DNA of 49,129 nucleotides, taken from Pelomyxa schiedti. Lineage: Eukaryota > Protista > Evosea. Below the pieces are notes generated by a model that saw only the letters and a list, made by a program, of their open reading frames with translations, did no database searches and had not been told where the DNA came from. The translations under genes were made by a program, and so were the position numbers. The stretch is taken from positions 1 through 49,129 of the forward strand of contig JAHLWZ010000913.1 in assembly GCA_020536535.1 (NCBI GenBank), written 5' to 3'. Shown here piece after piece: positions 1,493 through 34,122 of this stretch. Position 1 is the first letter of the stretch; each line of letters begins with the position of its first letter.

Positions 1493-1564
1493 CGCCCCAT
1501 GCAGGGGTCGAACCTGCGACTCCCGGATTAGAAATCCGGTGCTCTTCCTCTGAGCTAATGGGGC
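1493..1564 (-). tRNA. trnR-UCU: tRNA-Arg(UCU), intronless
   Basis: GCCCCAT/ATGGGGC-G; CCGGA-TT TCT AA-TCCGG; GGTTCGACCCC; downstream T-run. Confidence 0.93.
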
Positions 1565-1699
1565 ATGCTTTGGTTCTGCAAGAGATTGGACTTTATAACT
1601 GAACTGATACTCAAACGTCTAGTCCAAGCAAACCGGGATGAAATTTTTTTGACTTGCACACACAGTCATCTGGACATCTCTACCTTGCTTTTATTGATA

Positions 1700-1770
1700 G
1701 GCTCTGTTGTTTAGTGGCAGAATACTTGTTTTGGGTACAAGTGGCCCCGGTTCGATTCCGGGCAGAGCCC
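1700..1770 (+). tRNA. trnP-UGG: tRNA-Pro(UGG)
   Basis: GGCTCTG/CAGAGCC-C; CTTGT-TT TGG GT-ACAAG; GGTTCGATTCC; TTTT downstream. Confidence 0.93.
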
Positions 1771-2021
1771 TATTTTAAACTCTGTGTTGTTTTGTGTTGT
1801 GGCTGCGTGGTGCTGTTTGCTGTTGGTTGGCATGAAGATTTTTTCCCTCTGTTTGGCTTTTTTTTGCATTTGTTTAGTTTGTGTGTTTAGTTTGCCTGAT
1901 GTCTTCTCCTCTTTACATGCACTCCAGCAACACAAAAAAGAAAAGAAGAGTGTGGTGATGGATGCTGCTCACTTCCTCAGGGGAAAAAAAAACAAAAGTG
2001 AAGCTTATAAATAAAGTGTGT

Positions 2022-2095
2022 CGCCCACTCTGGGGCTCGAACCCAGGACCACTTGATTAAAAGTCAAGCGCTCATGCCATCTGAGCTAAGTAGGC
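2022..2095 (-). tRNA. trnK-UUU: tRNA-Lys(UUU), second copy
   Basis: Identical to 33-106. Confidence 0.95.
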
Positions 2096-2133
2096 TGGCA
2101 AAAAGAAGCAAGAAGAAAAGGAAAAAAAAAGAC

Positions 2134-2216
2134 CGACACCAGCAGGATTTGAACCTGCGCCTCCAACGGAGAAGTGATTTCTAGTCACTCGCATTAGACC
2201 ACTCTGCCATGGTGTC
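2134..2216 (-). tRNA. trnS-AGA: tRNA-Ser(AGA), second copy
   Basis: Identical to 238-320. Confidence 0.95.
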
Positions 2217-2333
2217 TTCTCTTATACATTTTCTATCGTTTTTATGTGATTATACACTGTAAAAGGAGGCACAAAACGGGGTGGGGGAAAAAAAACAAAA
2301 GATTGGATGGGAAGGGGAGCGGGGGAAAAAAGT

Positions 2334-2420
2334 TCCTCGCTGCCGGAATCGAACCAGCGACAAATGGATTACTTTGCTTTGCACTACAGTCCACTACTCT
2401 ACCAACTGAGCTAAGCGAGG
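2334..2420 (-). tRNA. trnY-GUA: tRNA-Tyr(GUA) with intron, second copy
   Basis: Identical to 438-524. Confidence 0.95.
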
Positions 2421-2552
2421 TTTCAGAGGTATGTTCAGAAAGACCTCTCATGTATTTCTCTCGTATCCAACCAACGGCAGAAAAGGAGGAAAAACCTCTT
2501 CAAATGCGAGAAGAAGCGGGAGCTTTTGTGCATCTTTTTTGAAAAAAAAAGA

Positions 2553-2634
2553 TGTGTTCGATGGGATTTGAACCCACGCCACCGAAGTGAACAGAGCCTT
2601 AATCTGTCGCCTTAGACCGCTCGGCCACGAACAC
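2553..2634 (-). tRNA. trnL-AAG: tRNA-Leu(AAG), second copy
   Basis: Identical to 657-738. Confidence 0.95.
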
Positions 2635-2672
2635 TACAGAGTTTGAAGCAAGGTCTTGCACTACGGGTAGCT

Positions 2673-2714
2673 CCACCCAAAAGTGGTTCGCTTCGCTCCC
2701 ACACTTTTGGGTGG
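2673..2714. repeat. 13-bp perfect inverted repeat (fold-back) at the array/unique-sequence junction
   Basis: CCACCCAAAAGTG (2673-2685) and CACTTTTGGGTGG (2702-2714); 2684-2714 is the exact reverse complement of array spacer 777-807. Confidence 0.9.
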
Positions 2715-2748
2715 TTGCCTATTTTATTTTTTATTTTTTTTTCGTTTT

Positions 2749-5700
2749 TTAGCTGTTTCCTGGGTTGAAGAAGAAATTGAAGAAGGCAGAAACGCCCTCT
2801 GGTATGGTTGTCTCTGATGGGGGTGTTGACGGAGGAGAGGCAGTTGGTGGGGGCCGTGGAGCGGGCATTGTGGGAATAGGTAGTGGTGGTGGTGGAGGTA
2901 GTACTGAGCCCGGAGGTGGTGGTGATGTACGTGGTGCGGGTGTGTAAGGAACTGGTTGCCATGCTGAAAGAGTAGTGGTGCTGTTTAGTGCATTCTCTGG
3001 TGTACTTTGTGGAGGGGGTGCTGATGCTGATACTGAAATAAGATGTGGTCCGGCTTTTACCACTGATACAACAGGCCCACCAGCTAATCCAGGGGCTGCA
3101 GTGATACTCACACCACCGGGATGTGTTGCAGTTTTGGTCCTCCCAGATATGCATTGCAATCTCTTCATGCTCTTACAGTTCCATACAGCAATACTCTATG
3201 TATAGGTTAGTTTCTCCCGCTAAAGTGAGTAAAGTGCAACTTTGTCAGAAGAGGCACTCCATAACTGCTCAGGAAAATTACTGCCTGGAAAATTTACAGA
3301 AACCATGGAATTCACTTGATCACCATGAGCATTGGGGAAGAAAGCAGTACACCTGCCAGTCACATATCCACTGTGTGTGCCATTTCTATATTTGGTTAGC
3401 CTTTTCTGTTTGTTTAGTTAAAACTACGTTGGTTTCTCCAGCTCCCATGCACGGACAGAACCAATAGCGGAACTGCAAGATAAATTTAGTTAGAAAGCAA
3501 ATCTTTTGGGAAGATTTACGCAGTGCACAGGAGATTCATTTCTGGAATCCTTGCTAATGACGTTGTTGCTCCAGATAAGTGTGGTACCCATCGGTATACC
3601 ACTTCAAGGGTCTGTGGGTTTAGTTCAACAACGTCATTGTTGCTGAGTCCTATGACCAGAATATCCTACCCTAACGTAAAAAAAAAAACATAACTCTTAC
3701 AGGCATTCTATAACCTCATCACAAAAGATTGATGTTGGTTGTATGGACAGAGATGCAGACCGCTCCAGAGTGTGTCCATCCCAAGCACATATCTTGCCAT
3801 CAGCAAAGCCTATCCATACAAGTGCGGAAGAGCGTTTGATTGAACTGCCTTCTGAGGCAAGTATTGAAGGCAGTAGTGAGGCACCAGAAGGGGAGGCGCT
3901 GGTACCAGAGTACATACAAATAACAGCAGTTCTGATAAATCTAAGATTAAGACAGTGGGTATGGGTCAGACCGAGTATTGGAGGCAATGAAGCGTTCCAC
4001 CATAGTATGGGTCAGGGCATCAATTATAACCAAACAACCATCACTGGTTCCGCACAATACAGATGTGTCAGCAGGAGCACCACATCTCACTTGATCTACC
4101 TCTAGTGTTGATACCTACTAACATATCAAAATTGGCCATAACCATGATTATTATACCAATGAAAAGCCCGACTTAGAAAGAGTATAAGTATTTAGCAGGC
4201 CAGACTCAAACGCTACCCAGAGTTTATTGCAACACCATATTGCGAATAGTGGATTTGTCTGGGAAATTGTGGTGCTCACAACAAGAGGTGACGTAACTTC
4301 ATTTGGAGAGTACGATAAAACGTACGTGGCAGAGGCATCTCTTTGAGAGTTAGAGGGGCCCGAAAATTTGTTGGTATACAATTCCTTCTCAGTCACCTGG
4401 GCTGATGTCGTTGAGTTCAAAATTTCAACAATAGTTTTGAGCAGAGGTCTTGAGAAAGTTGGGTTTTCGGCAGTCTTCACCAGTTCAATAATTGCAGGAG
4501 GACAGTCCTGTGAAGGTTAATGGTGGATAGGAGGATAGCTATGATACCTCTGTGAGAGATTTGGTCAGTTGAGTCAGCTCAACATTTGACTTGGCAACAT
4601 TCGGCACGTACATTTCCCACAGGAGAAGAAGGAAGCTGTGTGTGCATTAGAGAAAAACTTGTCTGGAAAAGGAAACCAGAAGACATCAAATTCCTCTGTC
4701 CAAAAAGCTGCCTTGATGAGGAATTTAAATTTAAAAATGGAGGATCAGGAATACATATTTATTAGCCCAGGTAGGTTGAATCAGCTCTGAAGCACTAAAA
4801 CCTGCCTTGGAACTGACTGGCGAGGTGTCACTAGGTGAAGGATTTGGTGACATCCAGAAGGGACCTTGGCTAAAGGAATCATGCAATCCTGGGAAATACG
4901 GTATTCCCAACTTGCAGGTAATATTACTCCCAGTGTGGTTAATCCATATATTTTGACTGTAGGTACTTCAGCATTACCGAAAAAAAAAAAAAAAGATAAC
5001 CTGTGGACTCTACCATGGAACAGAGGAGGAACTGCTGTATGCAATTCTTTCAAAATGGAACACAGGTTTCGTGAAATCCTTCCCTTGTTTAGAGTGAAGT
5101 AAATAAGGCAGGACAATACATCATCTTCTCTTCCAGGGTTACCCCATCATGTGTTAGGAAGTCATGGAGAAGAAGCCCACCAGGTTCAGTATAAACAGAA
5201 CAGGTAGCCTCAGATATCCCTAACTTGGGATTCATTGAAAGTTCTGAGATCTATACTACCTTTTATCTGCAACAATCCTTTGAATCCACGTAGAAGTGCC
5301 AGTTTCGTAAAGAACACATCAATTGAATCACGGGGAATGGAATCAAAAGAGTGTTGTTGGAATCCAGAAAGTTCTGGCAACTCCTGTATTATAGGATTTT
5401 TCGTGGAACTGCTAACTGTGGTTTCTGAAGCAGTATTTGGCTCGTTCTTGGAATTGAGATCACTGGAGTCAGGAGATACACTCCTTTCCTTTTTTCCAAA
5501 CACAGGTAATGCTTCCTCACTGTGAGCTGCATCAGGTAGCAATAGCCGAGCGCACATATGTATCCCTGTTTTACGACATTTGATCCAGCCCCAACCATCC
5601 CGCGCCCCTCTCACACATTCCCTCTGTGTAAATTGGCACAGATGACAACTGGGGCATAGAATCAAATGGCGTGATAGTGGCTGTAAAACTCCAGCATGTA

Positions 5701-8700
5701 CAACACTGCATGTGGATTGCATGGCAAGTACTTGAGATAAGAGTGTATTTTGTGCTTGTCTCGGAGAGAGTTGAGACACTGTAGTAGCTGTGTGTGGAGG
5801 CATACGAACAGAAACTGTTGTTGAATTTTGAGAAAGAGAGAAGAAAACGAAGGCAATTTCATGTCCAAGAAGAAGTAGCACCGCATTTTTCCAAACAGAG
5901 AGCCTTTAGTAAAACTTAAATTTAATGGCGATCTTGGTAAGGAAACCTTTGAACACCGGGAATAGACATAGTTGCTGAGAGCAATTCTGTTCCAGCATTT
6001 GGAGGAAGGTGCTGCAATTCGAAGACATGGGTAATCTCAACAGTCGCATTTGGGATAGCAGACCACCACCCCTCTGTCATTCCAGAAAGTTCTTGAGACA
6101 TTAGTGTTGGGCACAGAAACTATTACCAGTAAGGGACGTTCATATTTTTAATGAGTCAAAACCTGTTCCACTATATTGGAGGAATTTCTTGTTGGGTATC
6201 CAAAAGAAATGGCCTCCAAAACTTCACAAATGATGTTCCAATCAGGTTTGCTTGAAAGGCCACAGTGGCCTGTTGCTCTATTCTATGCTATCTTTAATCT
6301 TGGGAATGAAGAGAAAAGACATACTTCAGTAGCCTCTCTTAGCCAGTCGAACCATTGAGCAAGCCAACCAATATTTATAACAATCTTTTCTCGCAAAATC
6401 AAAATCAGACCTTGTGGGGAACAATCAACAGACTTAGGTAAATAGTAAGAAATACACACCCATTTCCGACATGAACCTTCGTAACTGCCATGCTTTACCA
6501 GGTTCAATCCCACAGTCAACTGCCCACGCCAAAAACGTGGGTGCTGTAGTCAATGGCGTTGACATAGATCTGTTCCTCAAATATTCAGCAAAAAAGACCC
6601 AGCTCTCGGGTATGACCTGCACTGATTACCACTTGTTACAAATCGTAAGAGCGACCTTGTTCCCCTTCAGAATATTGAAAATAGCATCTCTAAGTTCAGT
6701 AATCCTACCATTGCCTGTAGGAATGACATCACGCAATCCAGCGTAAAGTGCCTAAAAAGTATGAGATAGAAAAGAAGAAGTGTGTAAACTTTTGGATAAC
6801 GGTGCTTGGCATGTGCAATGTTACTCATTGCATCATTTTCTACATCAGAGTCTGCATGTGTACCAATAAGGAGAAGTGGAGAAATATCACTGGCGTCTGT
6901 TAGGCACAAAACCCAATTCATGAGGTAATCCACCCAAGAAAAGTCCTTCTGTAAAAAGTACAATCAGTTCAAGAAGTAAAAACAGAAATACTTTTACCTT
7001 CTCAGCATTAAAGACAATTACAAAAGTATTTGAACCATGAGGTAAGAAGTAAGGAAGTACATTGAGGTATTCTGGATCTCCAGTAAAGTCCCAGAGGAAA
7101 ACGGTAGTTGCCGGAGAAAATGAAGTAGTATCACTATAGAGTTGTTGGACAGTAGTGATAGAGAGTAAAGGTATTTCAGCCTCCGTCTTGGAAATCCTGT
7201 TGCTGTGCATTGAAGTGAGGTACGTCTATCTGCATAAATCAAAAACCTTCTTCCCAAGGCTCGAGATAATGAATTAACCACAGTAGAGGTGCCAGCCTTA
7301 TGACCACCCAAGAAAATAATTCTATGTGACTGCCAATTAGATGCCGACATGCGTACCATTTCTAAATGTCTGCCATCCAGTTAGAGGACTTCAATAGTTG
7401 AGTATACTTTTTCATGGCTTTCCATTGCTTGTTAGGTATATCTTTCGGAAAACCAGTCAAAGGGTTCCCTAACCATTTTACATCCTGGGAGTTCCAAATA
7501 AGTTGTTTGTTGCGGGTGGGAAAAAAAGAATCACCTTGAGTGGCATTGTTGCAAGCCATGTTGGGAATGACTCAAAATTATTGCCAGACAAATCAAGTGT
7601 GCGCACTTCAGTTACAGAGGCAAGGGCCTCAGGAAGTGTGTGAAGTTGCATGTGTGAAAAATCAAGAGTTGATAATTCCTTGGATCTCAAATTACGGTCG
7701 ACATCAGCCGCTTTTCCAGCAAGTAATGCATCAAGAATTTGCTTTTTCATGAGGGACTGAGCCTGTGTAGTGGGTGTCATTTGTTGTTGAGGTTGAGGCT
7801 GGTTTGGTAGAGAAGTGTGGGAATTGAGTAGAATCTTGCTCCCAGATGGTACAGTTGCTGATTGATGAGAATTGAATGAGAAATAGGAGGTTGCTATATG
7901 GTGCATTACTAGATCTACATTTTTTCCTGTTTTGGAGCTCACTTCAAAGAAGTCCATGTGTCTTTGTGATTTTGGTTGAAAGGTTAGCATTACAGGTAAT
8001 GGTCTTACTCTGACTTCGAAAAAGCTCTGCCCTCTTCAAAGGAAACAGTTCGTCTCTTGGTATGACAGTGGTTTCCCACAATCACTTTACAGATATCCTG
8101 CAAGTTCAGATAGGTGGCAGAGTTCCGGATCCACATGGTTAAATCTGCATCTTATTAATACCTACAACTGTAAGAACACTTGTGCTTGCTTGAAAAAGTT
8201 TCTCTGTGTTTTATGCTGTAAATGTAGACAATAGCAAAGCATTTGTGAAAATAGGATCCAGTTAAGAACCGGAAACGTTCTTGACCTCTTATAAACTATA
8301 AGAAAAACGAGAAGGAAAAATGAACAATACTGTGGTTGATGTATTACAATCCTAACACATCTTTCACCTACATGTTCTATTCTACTTCTGGATGACATTT
8401 CTTTTTTGTTTTTTTTTTTTGGTTATTTATTTCAATGAAAAAAATGGATGGAATAAAAAAAACTCCAGGTACCAACAGCTAGCTCCGCCAACTTGAGAGT
8501 GTCCACTTTCGCTGTATCATCTGAACGCATGAGACCTGGAATTCAAGGTCACGATGTTACGAAGTTCGAGTCTCTGCAATATAAACCGGTCCACGTAGAC
8601 CACAGCTGCTCCTTATCAGCCTCGTAGTCCCCCAACATCAAGGCGTGAAACGACTCTTCTTTAGTAACACAAGGGGCCGCATTTCCACTCAACTTACGTG

Positions 8701-8707
8701 TGGCCAT
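2749..8707 (-). CDS. Multi-exon ROCO-family (LRRK-like) protein: degenerate Rab-like domain, LRR, Roc, COR, pseudokinase, WD40, Pro-rich tail
   Basis: Rab-like peptides: FHALMLGDYEADKEQL, IVIHQPQGQERFRFLTGSYF, KVIVGNHCH, FFEVSSKTGKNV. LRR: LRSKELSTLDFSHMQLHTLPEAL, VRTLDLSGNNFESFP. Roc: IIFLGGHKAGTSTVV, LWDFTGDPEY, LLIGTHAD. COR: IPESW. Kinase fold: LHTAVPPLFHGRVHSQNIWI. WD40: LWSASSDKSIAVWN. The Rab C-terminus and the LRR lie in one ORF (7478-7990). Confidence 0.8.
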
Positions 8708-9065
8708 ATCCACACGCACCGTATTCCCTCCTCTGAGTTTATTACAATTTATGCAATTATTGTGTTTCTTCCAAAGAAAACCCCAGAACAGCCAAGGCAG
8801 GGAAACAGCGCCAACGGAAAATGGGAAATCCAGGCGATCTGATCGTGGGCTTCAGAGACCGCTCCGCTGCGGCGATCACCGCTCCATTTCTTTTCTATTT
8901 CAAAAAAGGAACCCGAAAAGAGGCACGACTACATCGCCCGCGCGTGAGGTCCCACGCCAACAACCAAGTTAACAACAGCACCATCATCAATACTGTGGTG
9001 CCGCCGTTGACAGGGCGCCTACACAACACCAACACCAACAACAACAACAAGACAACAACACGGCC

Positions 9066-20321
<11,256 letters not shown>

Positions 20322-23914: not shown

Positions 23915-24066
23915 CCTCCTCTAGTGATCTTTATTTTATTATCTAAATGACACCAAAGACGCCACGCGCAACTGGCCCTCAGAGCAGGGAACTCAGATCA
24001 AAGTAAATTGTTTTCGAGAAGGGCGACAGCCCGAGAAATCTCAAGGAGAAAAAAAAAAAAAAAAAA

Positions 24067-26692
<2,626 letters not shown>

Positions 26693-26894
26693 TTTTCATG
26701 TTCCCACCTTTGTTGTCGTGGACGAGACCCACCGTGTACAAAACACACCAACATCACCAAAATCCACGACCAAAATTGGACCCTGAAGCGCACACCAAAA
26801 AAAAAAAAAGTGCCAGAGTTGGTGCAGTTGCAAGTCGGGCGGAAAGGGGGGAAAAAAAACCCCAAAGAAATCAAAGCTCCACACCACCAAATTA

Positions 26895-30411
<3,517 letters not shown>

Positions 30412-31067
30412 TAGAAACGAACCTACCTACCCATTTTTGAACAAACATAAGAAACCGTTGTTAAACGGTTGGAATGCCACACGAGCGCAAGTGCAACATT
30501 AGGGAAACCACACACACGAAAGAAAACCTAACAGTTGGGTGCCTACTTCTATTCGTCAAAAACAGACACTAACGCCTTTCATTGACAATCACACAAACCG
30601 CTGAGCCATGTTCAGAGAATATCCGTGAACCAGGTGCACTGAAGATTGCGTTTCTCAAGCAACAACAGTTCCGAGGGCGGTCGTGGAATTCCGAGCACCG
30701 TACGCCGGGGGGTTTGAACTTCGGGGGTGGATTTCGTGTCAATTTACCTTTGTCATTTCGGGCATTCCGCGATTGCGCGTTTTTTCCGTCTTTCACCCCA
30801 GCCTGATGCGGAAGGGAGGGATCTGTGGTAGCGATCAAGGAGGAAAATGTGCGCAGGGAAAGCAATTTAGGCGAGATAATCAAGAAGCCGTGGTACGGAA
30901 AAAACAAATAATCAGCTGATGATATTTGATCAGTTCAAAAAACCCTCTACCGTTCACTTTATAAACGAAGCAAAAAAAGCTGTACCAAAACACAAACAAT
31001 AAAACAAACAAAAGCAAGAAAGAACCTAGCAACACAGCAACCAATACAAAAATAACTGACAACAAGA

Positions 31068-32021
31068 ATGAACTTCCCCATCGAATGTGTGGACGCTGAA
31101 ATGGCCAACAACAACGAGACCCCAGTGCAAGGCAGAAAAACCTCCACAACATCATACGGACTTTCCCGTGACTCGCACAAAAGGAGCAGGGCTCATGCTC
31201 GTGACTCAGTAGGCAGCAAGACATCCTATCCCACAATCCCGATTCAGGCAGTTAATGCCGACGATACCCAACGGCTGGCCGACGGACTCTCCGAGCTCCT
31301 CCTTCGCATCGTAAATGCACCCGGGCCCAGCGTCGGCCCCCAGCCTCAGCAAAACAACAACCCATCACGAGGCACCAAGACGATCTTTGACGGCTCGCGA
31401 GGCCGCGCTCCCACAATTTCGCTTTACGACTTCACGCTCCGCGTGAGCCGGCACTCTGGGTGCACGAGGGCGGCGCTTGTGGCGGCCTTGGTGTACTTGG
31501 ATCGGCTAATGGTCAAGCACCCATTCCTGACCTTGACCGAAACAAATGTCCACAGGCTTCTATGGACATGGTAGGCCTTTTCTTCCTCTTTTTTTTTCCC
31601 GATTTTTCTGACCACCTTGGTAGCGTCGTAGTGGCCATCAAATACTTCGAGGATAGCTTCTATAGTAACGCGTACTATAGTAAAGTCGGGGGTGTTACAT
31701 TGGTGGAGATGAACCACTTGGAAGTAACACTGCTGCTCGCGCTGGGGTTTGACCTCTTTGTCACCCCAAAGCAATACCAGCAATACGACGACGCACTGAC
31801 TTCATCGTGTGGTAAGATCACCAAATCCCGTGGTGTTCAGTGATGGCTTACCTTTTCCCCTAGACTATGCTGCAGTAAGAAAAGCCCAAAGAGAAGCGAG
31901 CCTGACACTCGCCGCGATGGTCTGCCCTGCCCACTACATGCAGCCGATGCAGATCTCTCCACCTGTACAGTGCACATCCACAACACAGCCGATGAAGAAG
32001 ATCCCGGCATCATCCTCATGA
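31068..32021 (+). CDS. Pho80/CYCU(P)-type cyclin
   Basis: PTISLYDFTLRV...ALVYLDRL...TNVHRLL, KYFEDSFYSNAYYSKVGGVTLVEMNHLE; two short GT-AG introns. Confidence 0.9.
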
Positions 32022-32101
32022 TTCCGGCCCAGGATCTCCTGTGCACAAACAACCAAAATCACACACCATGTAGATTCCACAACTGTAGTGAGTCGTGGAA
32101 T

Positions 32102-32575
32102 TTAAATATAATTATTTATTCCGGCACCCTCGTTTGTTCTCGCTTTTTCAGTTTCTTCGAACTCCCAACTTGGTCCCAGATCCAAGATACCGCGGTCCCC
32201 AGAGGACCAGTCAGAAAAAAACACCGCAACTGTGGGAAGCATTTTTGGCTTAGTCACTATTGGTGTGGGAATGTTCCACTGCAGGGAAAATGTCATGTTG
32301 GATAGCTTCTCGGAGTGGAAAGTGGATTGGTGGGTGCAGGACTGACTTGGGTCGCTATCGTAATGGGGTTGTTGTGGTTGTGTTGGGTACGGCAGAGTAC
32401 AGTTCAGTAAAGTACAGCCAGTCAGTGCGTCATGATGAAACTGTACATAGGTTAGAAGGGAGAGTGGTACGAGAGTGGAGGAGAAGATTAAGTTATACCT
32501 TGCAGCGTCTGTGAAAAAAAATCCTTGTGTAGAAGAAGGTATTCTTATTTCCAATCTCGCACTTCCAGAACCACT
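32102..32575 (-). CDS. Hypothetical gene, 3' part only; no recognisable domain
   Basis: Clear minus-strand intron GTATAAC...CTAAC...TACAG (~32443-32498) followed by a ~113-codon open frame to TAA at 32102; 5' end not resolved. Confidence 0.3.
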   Translation of the reverse strand, partial: SGSGSARLEIRIPSSTQGFFFTDAARYNLIFSSTLVPLSLLTYVQFHHDALTGCTLLNCTLPYPTQPQQPHYDSDPSQSCTHQSTFHSEKLSNMTFSLQWNIPTPIVTKPKMLPTVAVFFSDWSSGDRGILDLGPSWEFEETEKARTNEGAGINNYI

Positions 32576-33132
32576 ACCGAACAACAACCACGGTTCTGTG
32601 AGCTATTTGGAGAAAGGCTTCGCTAGTTGGGGAAATCAGGTTCTCTTGTTTCTTGTTTGTATGCAAAAAACTTCGGTTTGCTTGCAACCGGCGTTGTGGT
32701 TCCCTTTCATGGTCAGCCAAAAGCACCACACGAAATCACCTCAACAAACATCATTCCCAGGGGTTGATGGCAACAGCCCACAACTGACTGCCCTGTCAAA
32801 GTTGTTGTTCCTTTGCTCCACGTCATCCCCTTTTTAATGTGCACGGTAACCAATCATGCAAGACTAGCCATCCGCACAAGCTCCAAGTTGGGTTCATCAT
32901 GATGGCAGAAGTGTCACCCAACTTAGACCAAACACTGCACACTACAACCGACACCGTGCCAAAAACTACACATAACGACAGGTCATTTCGAACAACAAGA
33001 CTGCGTACAGCCTCTGGGAGCAAAAACTTTGCGCGCCAACTTTTTCGGTTTTTAAAGGAAAATTTTTTGGAAATAAAACATAAACAAAAAAAAGGCGGCA
33101 AGAAACAGCATGCACAGTGAAGGCCAAGTGGT

Positions 33133-33230
33133 GCATTTTGGGAGCAGCAAGGCGCATTTGGGAGCATTTGGGAACATTTGGGAGCAAAGAGTGGGTGGTT
33201 GTGCAGCATTTGGGAGCAGAGCAGTTTGGG
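33133..33230 (+). repeat. Clustered 10-bp repeat CATTTGGGAG in intergenic DNA
   Basis: Tandem copies at 33155, 33165 (one mismatch) and 33175; further copy at 33207; variants at 33134 and ~33222. Confidence 0.8.
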
Positions 33231-34122
33231 TGGTGGTGGTGCATGCATCATTTTTGGGGATAGTGGGGTGGGATACATAATAACATCAGCCATTCTGATA
33301 GATAATACAGGCGGGGGAAAATATTATTAATGCCTCGTATATTTGTAGCTGTGTGCGGTTGGTGCCGGTTCGCCCCTGAAACGCCATCAACCACCCTCGG
33401 ATGTAAACACCTTCCTTTAAAATCAAAAAGATACTCTTTCTTTATGTGAGGCGTGGGCAGTAGCATTCGGCACTACTACTGGTAGTGCCAATACGACTTG
33501 GCAGGGTTCTGTTCCCTCACTAATTTTGTGAGAAGCAAGTGAGAACTCGAGGGAAAACCTACCTTGACGAGCATGAGAAATAGGGAGGTCACTGTGACAA
33601 GCGTGGCTCCAACGCGTCGCAGACCGCCAAAGAAAAGAAAATAGGTTCACAAGGAGCGGAAAGCACGGCTCGAAGAGCAAAGGGTATCCGGATCAGAACC
33701 ACCTACAAACGAACGACAGCCCCCGCATCGCCTTCGTGTTTTTATCGGATTTCGGGGATGGGGCCCAATGAGCCTGATATCCTGGATGATAGGTGGCTGA
33801 CACAATCAACCAGGACACCGCCTTCCTGTGCGGTGCACAAGATCCCTCTTTGCACCTTTTATTGTTCGCCCGTGTATTTGTTGGCATCACCGTCCCCTTG
33901 ATCTTGCGTTCATTTTCCCCAAAAAAAAAAACAAAAAATAAAAAAAAAAAACCCCACTAAGCAAAGGTCGTTGTCATCAGAGACCAAGACCGAAACACGG
34001 GACAACAACAGTCTTCTTCCGAAGAGGCAGCAGCAGCATCATCATCAGCGTCAAGCGACGACAGCCAGCACCGACGCAACCCGGGCAGCAGCCGTCGACG
34101 ACAGAAGGGAGGTGGTGATAAA

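Follow-up and report, generated by a model that had tools for sequence, protein, structure and literature searches.

The minus strand of a 49,129-nucleotide stretch of Pelomyxa schiedti DNA (contig JAHLWZ010000913.1, assembly GCA_020536535.1, analysed at its full length and hereafter called the window) carries a real, transcribed gene in which a Rab-type domain is joined in cis to a chain of leucine-rich repeats (LRRs), Roc, COR-like, kinase-like and WD40 parts. The product, Pelo_14039, is a Rab-headed protein of the ROCO family whose catalytic motifs have been lost and which probably works as a non-catalytic scaffold or regulator. The gene had been singled out in an earlier note, made from the letters of the DNA, as a fusion of a Rab with an LRRK2-like ROCO protein. 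The fusion in cis has stood, on the strength of a shared exon, spliced RNA and its recurrence in two paralogous genes, and no paper on the layout was found within a limited literature search, in keeping with the note, which knew of no description. The wording "two G-domains", which suggests two working switches, was not supported, as the intact P-loop, the DxxG aspartate and the NKxD motif of the Rab-like part and the P-loop lysine of Roc are lost.

A search with exon 6 (7535–7960) as query retrieved a 1570-residue protein of this anaerobic amoeba, deposited as hypothetical protein Pelo_14039 (P0001 in this analysis), which is 100% identical over the exon. The exact codon-by-codon mapping of this protein onto the window defined a single gene of 29 exons between positions 8707 and 2749, interrupted by 28 introns of 38–72 nucleotides each, and the ATG at 8707 is the first one downstream of an in-frame stop at 8854. 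From the N-terminus the product consists of the Rab-like head, a glutamine/proline-rich (Q/P) linker, the LRRs, Roc, a COR-like region, a kinase-like remnant, the WD40 part and a proline-rich tail. The four Rab peptides quoted in the earlier note were all found by three-frame reading on the minus strand, in exons 1, 3/4, 5 and 6. The two halves of the chain meet in exon 6 (7961–7535), placed inside the program-made open reading frame (ORF) 7478–7990, which holds the G5 motif and helix α5 of the Rab-like domain, the Q/P-rich linker and the first LRRs. In this exon the Rab part runs into the LRRs in one continuous frame, without a stop or a terminal cysteine motif, exactly as had been claimed.

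The joining of the two parts was followed at the transcript level with contigs placed on 2850–8849, which came from four runs of one study, two of single-cell RNA-seq and two of DNA type (library not on record). The RNA contigs contain 11 spliced joints (GT..AG or GC..AG on the minus strand) and one loose end that fits a twelfth intron, and all 12 introns backed in this way coincide with the deposited model, those at 8145–8189 (GC..AG), 7962–8008, 7485–7534 and 7370–7407 being among them. One RNA contig joins exons 4, 5 and 6 and reaches position 7728. A second one begins at 7751, covers what remains of exon 6 and enters exon 7, with its loose end fitting the start of exon 8. Both contigs overlap in exon 6, where they show non-reference alleles shared with one of the DNA-type runs. 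The link between the ATG at 8707 and the Roc exons is thus seen in RNA for exons 4-5-6 and 6-7-8, but not for exons 1–3 nor in any single spanning contig; exons 1–3 lack RNA cover because a poly-A tract (8392–8434) breaks the contigs. At this border the end of an RNA piece coincides with 8287, where the acceptor of exon 4 is predicted; its contig holds 19 further letters that were not placed. Contigs of run X2 (7890–8068 and 8113–8269) retain two introns that are spliced out in run X1, and represent pre-mRNA or genomic DNA that entered the single-cell library.

Two in-frame TAA codons separate the halves of the Rab-like domain in the genomic sequence and lie inside the 45-nucleotide GC..AG intron 8145–8189, a type of intron that accounts for 1.59% in the genome paper of Pelomyxa schiedti. 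This TAA pair could pass for the sign of a broken gene. Tiny introns of 18–25 nucleotides, a guess from the sequence that would account for the in-frame TAA TAA and two changes of frame, were discarded, the RNA joints giving introns of 38–50 nucleotides, one of them GC..AG.

Exons 1–5 together with the start of exon 6 build a complete Rab-like fold; a complete Rab fold had been read in the earlier note from five short exons starting at ATG 8707. The Pfam Ras profile matches residues 67–187 with an E value of 2.7e-23, and in a sequence search of the PDB all 60 matches listed for the head are Rabs, headed by Rab1A and followed by Rab18, Rab2, Ypt1 and Rab8. In the AlphaFold2 model of the head (mean predicted local distance difference test score, pLDDT, of 78.9) all six strands and five helices are present, with strand β1 at residues 18–26 and helix α1 at residues 32–39, and only residues 43–60 appear disordered (pLDDT below 50). 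The best Foldseek matches of this model are Rab35, Rab2A, Rab8A, Rab1A and Rab11 (template modelling scores of 0.73/0.85–0.89). The model was made from a small alignment of Rabs, which favours a Rab-like outcome, and is taken as supporting rather than independent evidence.

The alignment with canonical Rabs revealed several replacements at the nucleotide-binding motifs. The P-loop GDSGVGKS reads GDYEADKE (8632–8609, minus strand), WDTAGQ at switch II reads HQPQGQ, the G4 motif GNKCD reads GNHCH (8076–8062, minus strand) and SAK at G5 reads SSK. The G1 pattern GxxxxGK[S/T] fails, with the second glycine changed to aspartate and the Ser/Thr to glutamate; the aspartate of DxxG is gone and both the lysine and the aspartate of NKxD are replaced. 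The P-loop lysine and the GQE of switch II are kept and G5 is nearly intact. The C-terminal cysteine motif for prenylation is absent, the head being internal and its helix α5 running directly into the Q/P-rich linker and the LRRs. Judged by these matches, the N-terminal domain is the descendant of a Rab GTPase that kept the fold and lost the nucleotide motifs and the prenylation tail.

Downstream of the head, the LRR region gave modest Pfam matches (LRR_1, 22.3 bits on exon 6, above the cut-off). The Roc profile matches residues 347–473 with 31.2 bits against a cut-off of 27, and the best PDB matches of this domain are to the Roc of LRRK2 (E 2e-5). The aligned Roc P-loop is GGHKAGTST (7308–7282), with threonine at the place of the lysine, and the motifs DFTG (7093–7076) and THAD (6864–6850) are kept. 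The COR-A profile reached 16.9 bits against a cut-off of 35.3 and no COR match was obtained with the whole protein as query; the COR-B part aligns (E 1e-4) to an ORF on contig C562 that itself matches Pfam COR-B. At the C-terminal end, about 300 residues match WD40 proteins in a phmmer search of the PDB (U5-40K, 5e-5; β-TrCP, 4e-4; WDR5; range to 1e-2), and weak Pfam propeller matches were found in the same region.

The kinase-like part lies between these regions and was not matched by any Pfam kinase profile in the search of Pelo_14039. Its 27 weak PDB matches (E 0.056–2), all of them to protein kinases, fall on the catalytic loop and helix F, and BLASTP relates it to a kinase exon on C562 (E 0.002). 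Aligned with other Pelomyxa ROCO kinases, it has neither the glycine-rich loop nor the VAIK segment. The sequence FHGRVH (5020–4950) takes the place of the HGDLH of some paralogs or of the canonical HRDLH, the HRD aspartate becoming arginine, and KLG (4916–4899) that of DFG, with lysine for the aspartate. A segment resembling helix αF, starting with DVFCF, is placed at 4687–4611, and an intron follows the catalytic-loop segment at the same place as in several other Pelomyxa ROCO kinases. As aligned, the kinase part is a degenerate remnant without any catalytic motif. Thus, for the downstream order given in the earlier note (Roc, COR, kinase fold, WD40), Roc and WD40 were recovered, COR was weak and the kinase reduced to a remnant, which confirms the kinase fold only in part, and a Pfam search of the spliced protein returned Ras and Roc but neither COR nor kinase.

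Two further genes, on contigs C562 and C1001, encode a Rab-type head, LRRs, Roc, COR-A and COR-B, and collinear ORFs of kinase and WD40-like sequence lie downstream (the Pfam kinase matches for the downstream ORFs were obtained on those of C562). In each of them a single ORF of 391–407 residues covers the Rab's C-terminal half, the LRRs and the N-terminal half of Roc. The product of the C1001 gene is deposited as a "GTP-binding protein yptV1" (P0156, 629 residues), which is a truncated model: its locus occupies positions 7837–2371 on the minus strand of the piece C1001:13500–23499, and ORFs for COR-B, kinase and a propeller-like part continue downstream. An in-frame stop at 5498–5500 of this piece, between two ORFs of the same frame, may be intronic or premature. 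Where they align, the C562 ORF's Rab-type part and Rab1-type proteins share 48–57% identity, and among solved structures the head of P0156 scores highest with Rab8A, Rab1A, Sec4, Rab3, Rab35 and Rab10. Both genes keep the Rab P-loop, the Roc P-loop, the glycine-rich loop, HRD and DLG, and have lost the glycine and the glutamine of switch II.

Over 527 columns, residues 1–560 of Pelo_14039 are collinear with P0156 from the Rab part and the linker to the LRRs and Roc (22% identity, E 2e-20), and C562 and C1001 give the best matches to its Roc among about 20 sampled loci, most of which are ROCO or LRR genes. These two genes have far fewer introns than the gene of Pelo_14039, and share none of those in the Rab part with it. 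The three fusions are likely to share a common origin, and only likely because the intron positions in the head differ. Since C562 and C1001 repeat the domain order, their Roc and kinase motifs being far closer to the canonical ones, the Rab-headed ROCO genes are a small lineage-specific group, of which Pelo_14039 is the most divergent of the three members in the genome. This genome thus holds three versions of a Rab-ROCO protein, two active-looking and one fully dead.

The ROCO expansion of Pelomyxa schiedti is very large. Genome-wide, about 97 COR-A matches were found on many contigs, with tandem clusters on C388 and C30, which to our knowledge is among the largest ROCO expansions. For the ORFs of C388 and C30, Pfam showed no Ras match on a separate head. 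On C30 (piece 24000–33999, minus-strand ORFs 10000–7025 and 5410–2405 of the piece) two tandem ROCO-like ORFs of about 1000 residues show weak COR-A and no P-loop, glycine-rich loop or HRD pattern. A gene on C582 (piece 1500–9500, minus strand 6555–3679 of the piece) has yet another multidomain layout with a small GTPase, in which an RNI-type LRR ORF precedes a Ras-like G domain and no COR was seen.

Searches beyond Pelomyxa, limited by word matching or by length, did not reveal the layout elsewhere. The word searches (whole Pelo_14039, its residues 1–195 and the 407-residue ORF of C562), confined to a length window of 0.55–1.75 times the query, found Rab, LRR and Roc together in Pelomyxa proteins only, so that the layout is not common in databases as far as these searches extend. 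The representative search with exon 6 returned only Pelo_14039 itself and LRR proteins, a metagenome scan with P0156 gave one LRR-only locus, the atlas searches gave generic LRRK1, MFHAS1 and ROCO clusters only, and a Rab-like head was present in none of 150 LRR matches. No published description of a Rab-LRR-Roc-COR-kinase-WD40 layout was found in the limited literature search. Reviews of the ROCO family list ARM, ANK, RasGEF, cNB, GRAM, myotubularin, PTP, DEP and other accessory domains, and no Rab, and the Pelomyxa schiedti genome paper mentions neither Rab nor ROCO. With such varied accessory domains already known in ROCO proteins, a Rab-like head is neat rather than startling.

The order LRR-Roc-COR-kinase-WD40 is shared with human LRRK2 (and LRRK1), and the Roc of Pelo_14039 is nearest to that of LRRK2 among solved structures. 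Unlike LRRK2, Pelo_14039 shows no Pfam match to ARM or ANK repeats, with the Rab-like domain at the N-terminus instead, and none to a kinase. LRRK2 binds Rabs through its ARM and ANK repeats, and Rabs recruit and activate LRRK2 and are also its substrates. The residue corresponding to the LRRK2 phosphosite Thr72 of Rab8A is Phe in Pelo_14039 and Thr in the C1001 paralog. Closer at hand, Roco2 (QkgA) of Dictyostelium discoideum is an amoebozoan LRR-Roc-COR-kinase with a link to a Rab: Rab1A-GTP binds Roco2 and its kinase activity rises, and Roco2 devoid of the N-terminal LRR part is constitutively active and independent of Rab1A (PMC3128523). The Pelomyxa head directly precedes the LRRs, and among solved structures a Rab1A is nominally its best match. 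However, the Dictyostelium Rab is a separate, prenylated and cycling protein, whereas the Pelomyxa domain is covalently fused, without prenylation tail or nucleotide motifs, to a chain whose kinase part is dead. Among Amoebozoa, a precedent for an enzyme-type domain without catalytic activity ahead of LRR-Roc-COR-kinase is IMLRK of Entamoeba and Dictyostelium, an inactive myotubularin-LRR-ROCO-kinase (PMC2927912), whose kinase is generally intact and whose head is a dead myotubularin phosphatase rather than a Rab-like domain.

The Rab, Roc and kinase motifs are replaced or missing, and therefore Pelo_14039 would neither phosphorylate nor switch in the manner of LRRK2; on its motifs its most likely role is that of a scaffold or regulator with no catalysis of its own. 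In this scenario the protein may pair through Roc-COR or WD40 with the catalytically intact ROCO kinases of the genome, and the fused Rab-like head would take the place of a Rab permanently and independently of membranes, replacing the Rab input normally supplied in trans to ROCO kinases, for example Roco2 of Dictyostelium and LRRK2 of humans. The dead copy would offer a natural experiment on the scaffold role of ROCO proteins without catalysis, and a covalent Rab-ROCO chain may serve as a compact construct for structural work on Rab-LRR-Roc.

By analogy with these systems, a Rosetta-stone reading of the Rab-ROCO fusion is plausible. A more specific proposal, tentative and on balance unlikely, is that the head is a built-in ligand or pseudosubstrate docking on the LRR or the kinase side of the same chain, with the Rosetta-stone corollary and the dead copy as a dominant regulator included. 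If this were true, the three Pelomyxa genes would be a Rosetta stone for a direct coupling of Rabs to ROCO kinases that is ancient in Amorphea and common to amoebae and animals, and the dead copy would act as a dominant regulator of its active relatives.

Several points weigh against a non-catalytic scaffold or regulator as the product of this gene. Exons 1–3 lack RNA cover and their exact borders are those of the deposited model only, the COR and kinase homology is weak, and the AlphaFold2 model of the kinase-like region, which was not used for the fold search, reaches a pLDDT of only 45. No ortholog from another species is at hand and therefore constraint is not properly measurable, the six coding variants being very few. 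A gene without any catalytic motif could be drifting toward loss, the loss of canonical motifs is no proof that nucleotide binding is lost, and the contact of the head with other parts of the chain is a proposal only.

The alternative that survives best, although it is rather improbable, is a decaying paralog, that is, a Rab-ROCO kinase copy that is transcribed but has no function and is turning into a pseudogene. The catalytic motifs of three enzyme-type domains are all gone, the protein forms a singleton cluster whose Roc-COR part has no detectable relative in its own genome at E 0.01, and the depth of the RNA contigs is low, with some of them unspliced. Against this stand 1570 codons over 29 exons with no stop or frameshift, each tested intron being spliced as modelled, and a Rab-like part whose fold-determining residues still support the Ras match given above. 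An open frame of this extent and its correct splicing argue for a real gene. Ten single-base differences separate the runs, of which four are synonymous, two nonsynonymous and four non-coding, and the sole indel is intronic; small as the numbers are, this is the pattern that purifying selection would predict.

Non-canonical nucleotide binding persisting in the Rab-like domain and in Roc, which would make Pelo_14039 an unusual working double switch instead of a dead scaffold, is improbable too. The P-loop lysine, the GQE of switch II and the nearly intact G5 of the head, together with the DxxG and THxD motifs kept in Roc, would be compatible with such a role, and some atypical G proteins tolerate such motif changes. 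The replacements, however, affect the second P-loop glycine, the Mg-holding Ser/Thr, the DxxG aspartate and both the lysine and the aspartate of NKxD in the head, as well as the P-loop lysine of Roc, now a threonine.

A duplicated Roc domain in place of a Rab is a very improbable origin of the head: the Roc profile does match residues 25–144 with 30.7 bits, but the Ras model scores far higher (61.7–82.8 bits), none of the 60 PDB matches listed is the Roc of LRRK2, switch II is of the Rab-type GQERFR and the paralog heads have the identity to Rab1-type proteins described above. Finally, a gene-model artefact merging adjacent Rab and ROCO genes, for which the uncovered exons 1–3 and the lack of one RNA contig from the Rab through the Roc exons could be invoked, has a negligible chance and is essentially excluded, since the Rab fold ends in the same exon that carries the first LRRs, without a stop, the RNA joins exons 4-5-6 and 6-7-8 in two contigs that overlap inside exon 6 and are each spliced onward, and the single ORFs of C562 and C1001 show the same continuous layout.

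Table. Parts of the Pelo_14039 gene in the window, with the basis of each assignment (aa, amino acids; nt, nucleotides).
Feature	Position	Strand	Content and basis
Exon 1, aa 1–40	8587..8707	-	Start ATG 8707, Rab-like β1, degenerate P-loop, α1; mapping of Pelo_14039, no RNA
Exon 2, aa 41–61	8473..8535	-	Switch-I-like, poorly conserved; borders of the deposited model, no RNA
Exon 3, aa 62–84	8331..8400	-	Rab-like β2-β3, ending in HQPQ in place of WDTA; no RNA
Exon 4, aa 85–117	8190..8287	-	Switch II GQERF, RabF-like motifs, β4; Pfam Ras profile positions 57–91, RNA contig
GC..AG intron, 45 nt	8145..8189	-	Carries two in-frame TAA; RNA joint 8144->8190
Exon 5, aa 118–162	8009..8144	-	α3, β5, GNHCH, α4; Pfam Ras profile positions 90–133, RNA joints on both sides
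Exon 6, aa 163–305	7535..7961	-	Fusion point: G5 (VSSK), α5, Q/P linker 7879–7742, LRRs; overlapping RNA contigs, Pfam LRR_1/LRR_4/LRR_8
LRR region, aa ~237–335 (exons 6–8)	7357..7741	-	Pfam; collinear BLASTP with P0156; introns 7485–7534 and 7370–7407 RNA-backed
Roc G domain, aa ~345–500	6731..7329	-	Pfam Roc; PDB matches to LRRK2 Roc
COR-like region, aa ~526–860	5435..6616	-	Weak COR-A; COR-B alignment to C562; RNA joints 6617–6655, 6752–6789
Kinase-like remnant, aa ~880–1135	4322..5377	-	Weak PDB kinase matches; BLASTP to C562 kinase exon
WD40-type β-propeller, aa ~1180–1460	3082..4189	-	PDB phmmer; five RNA-backed introns
Proline-rich tail and stop	2749..3081	-	Mapping of Pelo_14039; RNA contig 2850–3195

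On the plus strand, head-to-head with the ROCO gene, the segment 9066–18222 holds a GC-rich low-complexity ORF rich in Pro, Gly and Gln, beyond which three very long ORFs (709, 799 and 960 residues) show a faint armadillo-like match only. Directly 3' of the ROCO gene lies an array of 11 tRNA genes (33–2634 of the window), which holds two copies of a unit composed of Lys, Ser, an 87-nucleotide unassigned tRNA and Leu, placed about 1.9 kb apart.

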